Assembly (NCBI RefSeq): GCF_001194135.2
Contig: NC_068990.1
Coordinates: 14,977,296-15,041,295, forward strand
Origin: Octopus bimaculoides
Taxonomy: Eukaryota
Reading direction: 5' to 3'
DNA length: 64,000 bases
The first letter of the stretch is position 1. The number at the start of each line of letters is the position of its first letter. The notes under the pieces were generated by a model. It was not told the origin of the DNA and made no database searches. It saw only the letters and a program-made list of their open reading frames with translations. Both the position numbers and the translations under genes were made by a program. Positions 1,311 to 63,598 of the stretch are shown here, one piece after another.

Positions 1311-1446
1311 AATAATGCAAAGGATGACATTGTTAAAATTCCATTTGGTACAACATCAAACACTGTGAAAATCCACTTTAAAGCAGTCTCACCAAATCAC
1401 AGAATGCTGATCACAGTTTCTTTCAAAGGATGTTTTGAATCACAAT
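1311..1446 (+). CDS. Domain A1 C-exon (136 nt, NNAKDDIVKIPFG...GCFESQ)
   Basis: ctag|AATAAT...CAAT|gtaaat; phase 0 to 1. Confidence 0.9.

Positions 1447-63598: not shown

Follow-up and report, generated by a model that had tools for sequence, protein, structure and literature searches.

An octopus locus that probably encodes a very large protein of tandem discoidin-fold domains on threonine-rich spacers

The window analysed here is a 64,000-nucleotide (nt) stretch of the Octopus bimaculoides genome (contig NC_068990.1, positions 14,977,296 to 15,041,295 of the forward strand), AT-rich eukaryotic genomic DNA of ~32% G+C with many microsatellites and eight runs of N. It is probably an internal stretch of a single very large, apparently unannotated protein-coding gene, in which pairs of exons encoding one small globular domain recur in tandem and are joined by short threonine-rich linker exons. 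Taken as a whole, the locus is best explained as a gene for a secreted cross-linking protein with discoidin-fold domains arranged like beads on a string, a reading to which we assign a probability of roughly 0.6. Scans for tRNA genes and Rfam families found none in the window, and the collections of proteins and open reading frames (ORFs) that were searched contain no entry for this locus.

Exon array and reading frame

Six-frame translation of the window reveals a pair of peptides that recurs along the plus strand, and tblastn searches of the window with one exon pair of each of two types yield 43 domain-exon matches, all 43 on that strand. Splice sites were read unit by unit and then refined by script, resulting in 22 first-half domain exons (E1), 21 second-half domain exons (E2) and 32 short Thr-rich linker exons in phase 1-1, altogether 75 visible exons on the plus strand spanning 1311-63598 (Table 1). 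The acceptor is AG at every exon, and the donor is GT with the exception of a single GC at 22685. The phases (1 to 0 for E1, 0 to 1 for E2, 1 to 1 for the linkers) are mutually compatible throughout, and the introns, which range from 190 to 2,600 nt, hold transposon copies. The spliced exons form three open segments separated by gaps (2375 + 819 + 155 = 3349 codons) with zero stops. At two places, 43220-44219 and 60163-60975, the exon order is E1, gap, linker, and each gap must therefore contain one E2 exon (phase 0 to 1) for the frame to hold. With these two hidden exons of ~50 codons each the frame would run on across both gaps, and the exon count would come to 77 and the encoded stretch to ~3,450 amino acids; all 23 units would presumably be carried in one mRNA. 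The array is truncated at both window ends: it starts on an E2 exon and stops on a linker (63566-63598) that ends in phase 1, so that the gene continues past the window. We regard it as highly probable that the locus is one multi-exon gene encoding tandem discoidin-fold domains. An additional candidate, a Ser/Thr/Pro-rich phase 1-1 exon at 55061-55120/55138 on the plus strand (STTPSSPDKPTNQPTNHET...) between units 20 and 21, was dropped; it has a poor donor and no counterpart elsewhere, and the frame needs none.

The 23 domains, each of 134 amino acids, form two homogeneous blocks, nine of type 1 (the first partial, with E2 only) followed by fourteen of type 2. A type-1 domain is encoded by an E1 of 266 nt (phase 1 to 0; ESWCVF...KRFK) and an E2 of 136 nt (phase 0 to 1; NNAKDD...GCFES), followed by two Thr/Pro linker exons of 54-72 nt and 45 nt in phase 1-1; a type-2 domain is encoded by an E1 of 251 nt and an E2 of 151 nt, followed by one 33-nt linker exon (STTEAATTAT). 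Within a type, identity between copies is 88-100%, against ~63% across types, and the 20 complete domains have 20 distinct protein sequences. Among copies, synonymous divergence (dS) amounts to 0.20-0.24 and non-synonymous divergence (dN) to 0.034-0.040; the dN/dS ratio of 0.14 in type 1 and 0.20 in type 2 points to purifying selection on each copy since duplication.

A preliminary description of this DNA had arrived at much of the same layout: a frame of ~3,450 amino acids that includes two gap-hidden exons, nine domains of one type and fourteen of another, and an array running off both ends of the window all agree with the refined model. Its figure of 75 exons is right for those that are visible and wrong as a total that includes the hidden two, and calling the domains divergent was an overstatement in view of the identities just given.

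The cysteines C4, near the N-terminus, and C130, near the C-terminus, do not vary among the window copies, and C4 is found in at least 90% of the family rows. Both lie on terminal strands of the structural model described below, C130 aligns with the C-terminal cysteine of the pseutarin-C C1 domain, and the two presumably form a terminal disulfide clamp, as typical of the discoidin fold. Type 2 has a third, unpaired cysteine (KP(D/E)C), which is also kept in the type-2-like units of the European Nucleotide Archive (ENA) assembly ERZ21867824. Every domain is basic (isoelectric point 9.0-9.7, net charge +3 to +7.5), and N-X-S/T sequons are almost absent from the domains. The spacers between domains measure ~35 amino acids in block 1, 41 at the block junction and 12 in block 2. 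These linkers have 42-49% Thr and 50-76% Ser, Thr and Pro combined over their 12-41 residues; they are presumably O-glycosylated and extended.

Discoidin fold and a lophotrochozoan domain family

With the window copies as the only alignment, AlphaFold2 reached a predicted local distance difference test (pLDDT) score of 60, and Foldseek found nothing below E 0.1; this model was discarded. The model retained is that of the type-2 domain of unit 20, computed from a 36-row alignment (A4) that adds relatives: it has a pLDDT of 94.2 and a predicted template modelling score (pTM) of 0.88, the five models all lie at 93-94, and the structure is all-beta with nine strands. A Foldseek search of the PDB yields 45 matches at E<=0.001, and all of the top 50 are discoidin/F5-8C or CBM32 domains, with E values from 7.5e-6, a probability of 1.00 and template modelling (TM) scores of 0.53-0.67. 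They include neuropilin-1/2 b1/b2 (E 7.5e-6), the C2 domains of FVIII, FV and lactadherin, CASPR2 and retinoschisin, as well as the CBM32 modules of C. perfringens GH89 and NanJ; the module that superposes most tightly is the equally compact CBM32-6, at a root-mean-square deviation (rmsd) of 3.4 Å. Model and matches together display a distorted jelly-roll beta-sandwich of the galactose-binding-domain-like type, and this check, run on one domain, bears out the discoidin-like assignment made in the preliminary description.

The links at the sequence level are weaker, though they agree with one another. Searched against PDB sequences, the family profile has one credible match, to C1 and C2 of the factor V-like pseutarin-C (E 0.0011-0.0021), in a register that leads from a conserved Trp through PWIQIDL (equivalent to TVTIFVG) to a C-terminal ...LLGC. 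Domains of a relative from the nemertean Tubulanus polymorphus score 18.2 and 16.4 bits against PF00754 (E 0.003 and 0.01), below the gathering score; the window domains themselves match no PDB sequence, and an hhalign comparison of the family with a single fragmentary FA58C sequence, one of only six fragmentary proteins retrieved with a factor V C1 fragment as seed, was not significant. The fold match and these weaker links combined indicate a discoidin fold, and the domain is very probably a distant homologue. It is not a family member as current models define F5/8 type C; the discoidin-like reading is supported at the level of the predicted fold.

An exhaustive HMMER search with a profile of the window copies against 1.84 billion representatives recovered 30 proteins, a lophotrochozoan family. 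P0019 (bacterial DUF5018 repeats) and P0020 were discarded from this search as spurious low-complexity or repeat matches, and a word-indexed protein search returned nothing for a fusion of type 1 and type 2 and one fragment for the family alignment. The best HMMER matches are single-exon ORFs of ~60% identity on contigs of ERZ21867824; contigs L001-L003 of this assembly (28-30% G+C) hold E1/E2 pairs in tandem at 58-70% amino-acid identity, along with more diverged units. The annotated relatives, none of which has a Pfam assignment, include XP_064614628.1 ('mucin-2-like') of the chiton Liolophura sinensis, with 1824 amino acids and at least seven domains of 150 residues between long Pro/Thr (PT)-rich stretches, and XP_074658701.1 of T. 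polymorphus, with seven 146-residue domains and a Cys-rich C-terminal tail that has no detectable relative in PDB or Pfam. Uncharacterised octopus paralogues are XP_052834281.1 (O. bimaculoides), CAI9741633.1 (O. vulgaris) and XP_036370449.1 (O. sinensis); in the O. vulgaris paralogue the E1/E2 intron lies at the same position as in the window units. All share the motif C-x3-(D/E)(G/A)(M/L)-x-D...(I/V)RP...W...NV..(F/Y).V...P.G....I.I...C.

A domain, a PT-rich linker and the next domain occur in one frame in the annotated proteins of O. bimaculoides, Liolophura and Tubulanus and in an intronless ORF (P0011), and tandem arrays of the family are present on the three ERZ21867824 contigs, at an O. 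vulgaris locus (L007) and at a Liolophura locus (L008). By profile, motif and tandem PT-linked arrangement, the window domains belong to this unnamed lophotrochozoan family of discoidin-like repeats, on which a literature search found no paper. In Liolophura (CM072730.1, 9451-39021 of the locus) single-exon domains of 150 amino acids recur every 1.4-4.3 kb and the array crosses three adjacent gene models of 3696, 1824 and 5807 amino acids. Since it runs into both neighbouring models, a single array appears to have been divided by annotation into three or more genes, which is the kind of splitting that had been anticipated for automated annotation of the octopus gene. A frameshift at 35347/35350 of the chiton locus garbles the end of XP_064614628.1. 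Array sizes amount to at least 23 units in the window and at least 11,000 amino acids over the three chiton gene models.

One of the ERZ21867824 contigs, ctg115470l (L003), carries at 1-147 the end of a 1974-amino-acid uninterrupted ORF with a Lys/Ser-rich tail and no Pfam match, on the same strand as the diverged domain exons and ~4 kb upstream of them. It could be a giant exon of the diverged-domain gene, or an unrelated gene.

Proposed function and alternative explanations

Cys-clamped phase 1-1 modules, Thr/Pro-rich spacers and mucin-like relatives suggest a secreted extracellular protein. A bead of the discoidin/CBM32 type normally has a single binding site, formed by the loops at one end of the barrel. 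Each bead of the octopus protein would present one such loop-end site for a glycan or other anionic polymer; many weak sites in series would result in high avidity, and at least 23 basic beads would constitute a polycationic multivalent cross-linker. Cross-linking of this kind might gel or glue a secreted matrix (mucus, adhesive or egg coat) or agglutinate particles or microbes, and the free cysteine of type 2 could add intermolecular disulfide links. We give a cross-linker or lectin function somewhat less than an even chance; from the features described above we infer secretion, disulfides, O-glycosylation, the class of ligand and the tissue. On a broader scale, it is possible, though on balance doubtful, that an unclassified discoidin/CBM32 branch extends across the lophotrochozoans in the form of giant PT-linked arrays, VWD-less polycationic 'lectin mucins' that gel or glue via anionic glycans and have been overlooked as a major structural part of what cephalopods, other molluscs or nemerteans secrete.

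It is important to set out what weighs against the secreted cross-linker. Phospholipid, collagen and peptides are also among the ligands of discoidin domains, which makes a glycan or polyanion only one option among several. TM scores of ~0.6 and rmsd values of 3.4-5.9 Å denote real structural divergence. The window domains have no Pfam match at E<=10 and do not reach the PF00754 gathering threshold (28.2 bits), and PROSITE-type FA58C_1 and FA58C_2 signatures, which do match factor V-type control sequences, are found in none of 20 window domains and none of 51 family sequences; the suggestion that this may be an unclassified subfamily is borne out by the same results. The Thr-rich spacers are far shorter than the Pro/Thr/Ser-rich (PTS) regions of true mucins, and with linkers of only 12-35 amino acids the label 'mucin' is a loose one. 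As regards the gene, signal peptide, start and stop are all absent from the window, both gene ends lying outside it; the E2 exons of units 16 and 22 would be located inside gaps; whole extra units could hide in the large gaps, which makes the copy number uncertain and a minimum estimate only; and the model is built on genomic sequence.

Rather than one chain of 3,450 or more amino acids, the array could be a store of cassettes, with mRNAs that hold variable subsets of units and give rise to size isoforms. All unit boundaries are in phase 1, and because every unit is phase 1-1 symmetric any number could be skipped without loss of frame; the GCAAGT donor at 22685 (after E1 of unit 9) and the AAG acceptor at 21258-21260 (before E2 of unit 8) are possibly weaker splice sites. 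However, the array bears no sequence mark of mutually exclusive splicing, purifying selection is similar on all copies, and the annotated relatives are modelled with consecutive units. We consider variable inclusion somewhat unlikely, and it is compatible with the secreted cross-linker as to the nature of each unit.

The same protein could also have a role in cell adhesion or the matrix that does not involve lectin activity, its beads binding anionic phospholipid membranes, collagen or cell-surface receptors in the manner of the C2 domains of FV and FVIII, of DDR or of neuropilin b1; it would then not be part of a mucus or glue. This would be in keeping with the strongly basic domains, which suit anionic lipid, and with the top Foldseek matches, neuropilin b1 and the C2 domains of FVIII, FV and lactadherin, which bind peptides and phosphatidylserine. 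Yet the tightest superpositions (rmsd 3.4-4.0 Å, TM 0.61-0.67) are with glycan-binding CBM32 modules of bacteria that are just as compact, it is secreted mucin-like products that typically show Thr-rich linkers and giant arrays, and relatives are annotated as mucin-like; a non-lectin role is accordingly rated unlikely.

That the copy number, or part of the array, reflects mis-scaffolded or duplicated units around the eight N gaps is very unlikely, and such an artefact would alter the count and not the nature of the gene. Eight gaps within a tandem repeat do invite the suspicion. Six of the eight are intronic, and the exons on either side of them follow one another as expected: the flanks of 6910-6919 are colinear with the neighbouring unit, with ~122 nt missing, the gap at 19393-19402 sits inside one transposon copy and is colinear as well, and no exon is expected within 13284-14065, 50404-50595 or 58782-59016. 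At the remaining one of these, 9193-9202, the flanks overlap by 39 nt, which means that no sequence is missing there and is at the same time a point in favour of an assembly fault. A further such point is the 96.8% identity, over ~650 bp comprising linker exon, intron and E1, between 44249-44896 and 60976-61622 (units 16/17 and 22/23), each of which starts directly after a large gap that would hide an E2. Past these 650 bp the similarity breaks off and the E2 exons that follow differ, which identifies distinct paralogous units and not one locus assembled twice; the identity stems from recent conversion or duplication, or possibly from a scaffolding problem. Also speaking against an artefact are the differences between copies (dS ~0.2, every complete domain distinct), introns that vary in length and transposon content, and the colinearity at the three small gaps. 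Within block 1, 6228-6527, 9243-9542 and 12567-12866 are 91-97% identical including introns, with a period of ~3.0-3.3 kb, which indicates a very recent tandem duplication of three consecutive type-1 units (units 4-6).

It is extremely unlikely that the units are short genes of their own or belong to a decaying array of repeats without function: short in-frame ATGs do precede many type-2 E1 exons (MLFSSSLNTESWC...) and the collections lack a protein or ORF of the locus, but the 9-residue leaders are polypyrimidine tract read in frame rather than signal peptides, type-1 units do without them, not one of 3349 codons is a stop, dN/dS is low, the array has conserved splice sites and phases over its whole length, and it is also conserved in a second species (ERZ21867824).

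The introns hold two dispersed repeats. Copies of an interspersed repeat of ~400 bp lie at 19169-19610, 32121-32309, 50087-50382, 50597-50962 and 58498-58745; many more, of up to 85% identity, occur in the O. vulgaris locus L007 (OX597840.1), and none in the ERZ21867824 or chiton loci, a distribution that points to an octopod genome. A second repeat of ~180-200 bp is found at 4568-4748, 53677-53857 and 62814-62994 (and 61983-62176), with 64-78% identity between copies and matches of ~70-78% in the O. vulgaris locus. On the plus strand, a 113-amino-acid ORF at 59667-60005 has a weak zf-RVT match (E 0.0025, below threshold) and is probably an intronic remnant of a retrotransposon without long terminal repeats (non-LTR). 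On the minus strand, a 153-amino-acid ORF lies at 40390-40851; its C-terminal half is poly-Ile from a (TTA)n microsatellite (40440-40581), and its N-terminal part looks like a transposon-derived fragment.

Table 1. Exons of the array and the two gaps proposed to hide an exon (window coordinates)
Feature	Position	Strand	Remarks
Unit 1 (type 1, partial) E2	1311..1446	+	phase 0->1
Unit 1 Thr/Pro linker exon a	2049..2105	+	phase 1-1
Unit 1 Thr/Pro linker exon b	2269..2313	+	phase 1-1
Unit 2 (type 1) E1	2425..2690	+	phase 1->0
Unit 2 E2	2881..3016	+	
Unit 2 linker exon a	3698..3751	+	
Unit 2 linker exon b	3925..3969	+	
Unit 3 (type 1) E1	4083..4348	+	
Unit 3 E2	5653..5788	+	
Unit 3 linker exon a	6065..6118	+	
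Unit 3 linker exon b	6300..6344	+	
Unit 4 (type 1) E1	6457..6722	+	gap 6910-6919 in next intron
Unit 4 E2	8616..8751	+	
Unit 4 linker exon a	9029..9082	+	gap 9193-9202 in next intron
Unit 4 linker exon b	9315..9359	+	
Unit 5 (type 1) E1	9472..9737	+	
Unit 5 E2	11991..12126	+	
Unit 5 linker exon a	12403..12456	+	
Unit 5 linker exon b	12639..12683	+	
Unit 6 (type 1) E1	12796..13061	+	gap 13284-14065 in next intron
Unit 6 E2	14467..14602	+	
Unit 6 linker exon a	14880..14933	+	
Unit 6 linker exon b	15656..15700	+	
Unit 7 (type 1) E1	15813..16078	+	
Unit 7 E2	18417..18552	+	gap 19393-19402 in next intron
Unit 7 linker exon a	19703..19756	+	
Unit 7 linker exon b	20427..20471	+	
Unit 8 (type 1) E1	20562..20827	+	
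Unit 8 E2	21261..21396	+	AAG acceptor
Unit 8 linker exon a	22042..22095	+	
Unit 8 linker exon b	22262..22306	+	
Unit 9 (type 1) E1	22419..22684	+	sole GC donor (22685)
Unit 9 E2	23044..23179	+	
Unit 9 linker exon a	25068..25139	+	72 nt, longest
Unit 9 linker exon b	25309..25353	+	junction to block 2
Unit 10 (type 2) E1	25785..26035	+	phase 1->0
Unit 10 E2	27655..27805	+	phase 0->1
Unit 10 linker exon	28128..28160	+	STTEAATTAT
Unit 11 (type 2) E1	29661..29911	+	
Unit 11 E2	30727..30877	+	
Unit 11 linker exon	31912..31944	+	
Unit 12 (type 2) E1	33058..33308	+	
Unit 12 E2	34094..34244	+	
Unit 12 linker exon	34494..34526	+	
Unit 13 (type 2) E1	35366..35616	+	
Unit 13 E2	36116..36266	+	
Unit 13 linker exon	36458..36490	+	
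Unit 14 (type 2) E1	38167..38417	+	
Unit 14 E2	38791..38941	+	
Unit 14 linker exon	39624..39656	+	
Unit 15 (type 2) E1	39896..40146	+	
Unit 15 E2	41338..41488	+	
Unit 15 linker exon	41965..41997	+	
Unit 16 (type 2) E1	42493..42743	+	
Assembly gap, putative site of unit 16 E2	43220..44219	.	required by frame, not seen
Unit 16 linker exon	44342..44374	+	
Unit 17 (type 2) E1	44627..44877	+	
Unit 17 E2	45392..45542	+	
Unit 17 linker exon	46028..46060	+	
Unit 18 (type 2) E1	46289..46539	+	
Unit 18 E2	47048..47198	+	
Unit 18 linker exon	47696..47728	+	
Unit 19 (type 2) E1	48082..48332	+	
Unit 19 E2	49639..49789	+	gap 50404-50595 in next intron
Unit 19 linker exon	51027..51059	+	
Unit 20 (type 2) E1	52498..52748	+	domain of unit 20 is the one modelled
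Unit 20 E2	54158..54308	+	
Unit 20 linker exon	54607..54639	+	
Unit 21 (type 2) E1	55899..56149	+	
Unit 21 E2	56879..57029	+	
Unit 21 linker exon	57170..57202	+	gap 58782-59016 in next intron
Unit 22 (type 2) E1	59170..59420	+	
Assembly gap, putative site of unit 22 E2	60163..60975	.	not seen
Unit 22 linker exon	61069..61101	+	
Unit 23 (type 2) E1	61354..61604	+	
Unit 23 E2	63199..63349	+	
Unit 23 linker exon	63566..63598	+	ends in phase 1

Significance and comparison with known systems

What is new here is a compact, non-canonical lophotrochozoan family of discoidin-fold domains, present at unusually high copy number in a mucin-like array. Current domain libraries miss this well-supported new family of the discoidin/galactose-binding-like superfamily. 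Domain curation can now draw on a confident model, on a seed alignment and on a taxonomic range that takes in cephalopods, a chiton and a nemertean. Automated annotation either misses the very large repeat genes of the family or breaks them up, and their products would for this reason escape identification in proteomic work on the mucus, adhesives or egg coats of molluscs. If the functional proposal is true, a cationic lectin string with a valency of 23 or more would represent a simple design for gel formation and wet adhesion.

Compared with F5/8 type C domains (PF00754, CBM32), the window domain has the same predicted beta-sandwich fold, cysteines near both termini and a common register of C..(D/L)G(M/L)..D..I....I..SS, a Trp, PWIQIDL/TVTIFVG and a final ..GC. 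At 134 amino acids it is shorter than animal C domains (~150-160 amino acids) and compact like bacterial CBM32, and the canonical WLQ(V/I)DLG and TQG are replaced by TVT(I/M/L)FVG and RYGA. The lophotrochozoan relatives, none of which has a described function or a domain assignment, are only 17-34% identical to the window domains over the aligned parts; the chiton domain, with 150 amino acids, is encoded by a single 453-nt exon and is flanked by PT-rich regions much longer than those of the window. Gel-forming mucins of the MUC2 type resemble the octopus gene in that Cys-containing globular modules alternate with Thr/Pro-rich segments in a huge, tandemly repeated gene. Their linkers, however, extend over hundreds to thousands of amino acids, compared with 12-35 in the window, and their globular module is CysD, whereas that of the window is discoidin-like; no VWD, C8, TIL or CTCK module is found between 1311 and 63598, in a gene that runs past both window ends.

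The nearest characterised architecture is that of sea-urchin Nectin, a secreted adhesive and cohesive protein of 984 amino acids with six tandem FA58C domains, in which a surface-exposed unpaired cysteine has been proposed to mediate dimerisation (PMC10057474). Both proteins consist almost entirely of tandem discoidin-fold domains, and an odd cysteine is likewise present in the type-2 units of the window. In Nectin, six canonical domains follow each other directly, whereas the octopus array comprises at least 23 non-canonical domains separated by Thr/Pro spacers, and its gene is longer than 64 kb.

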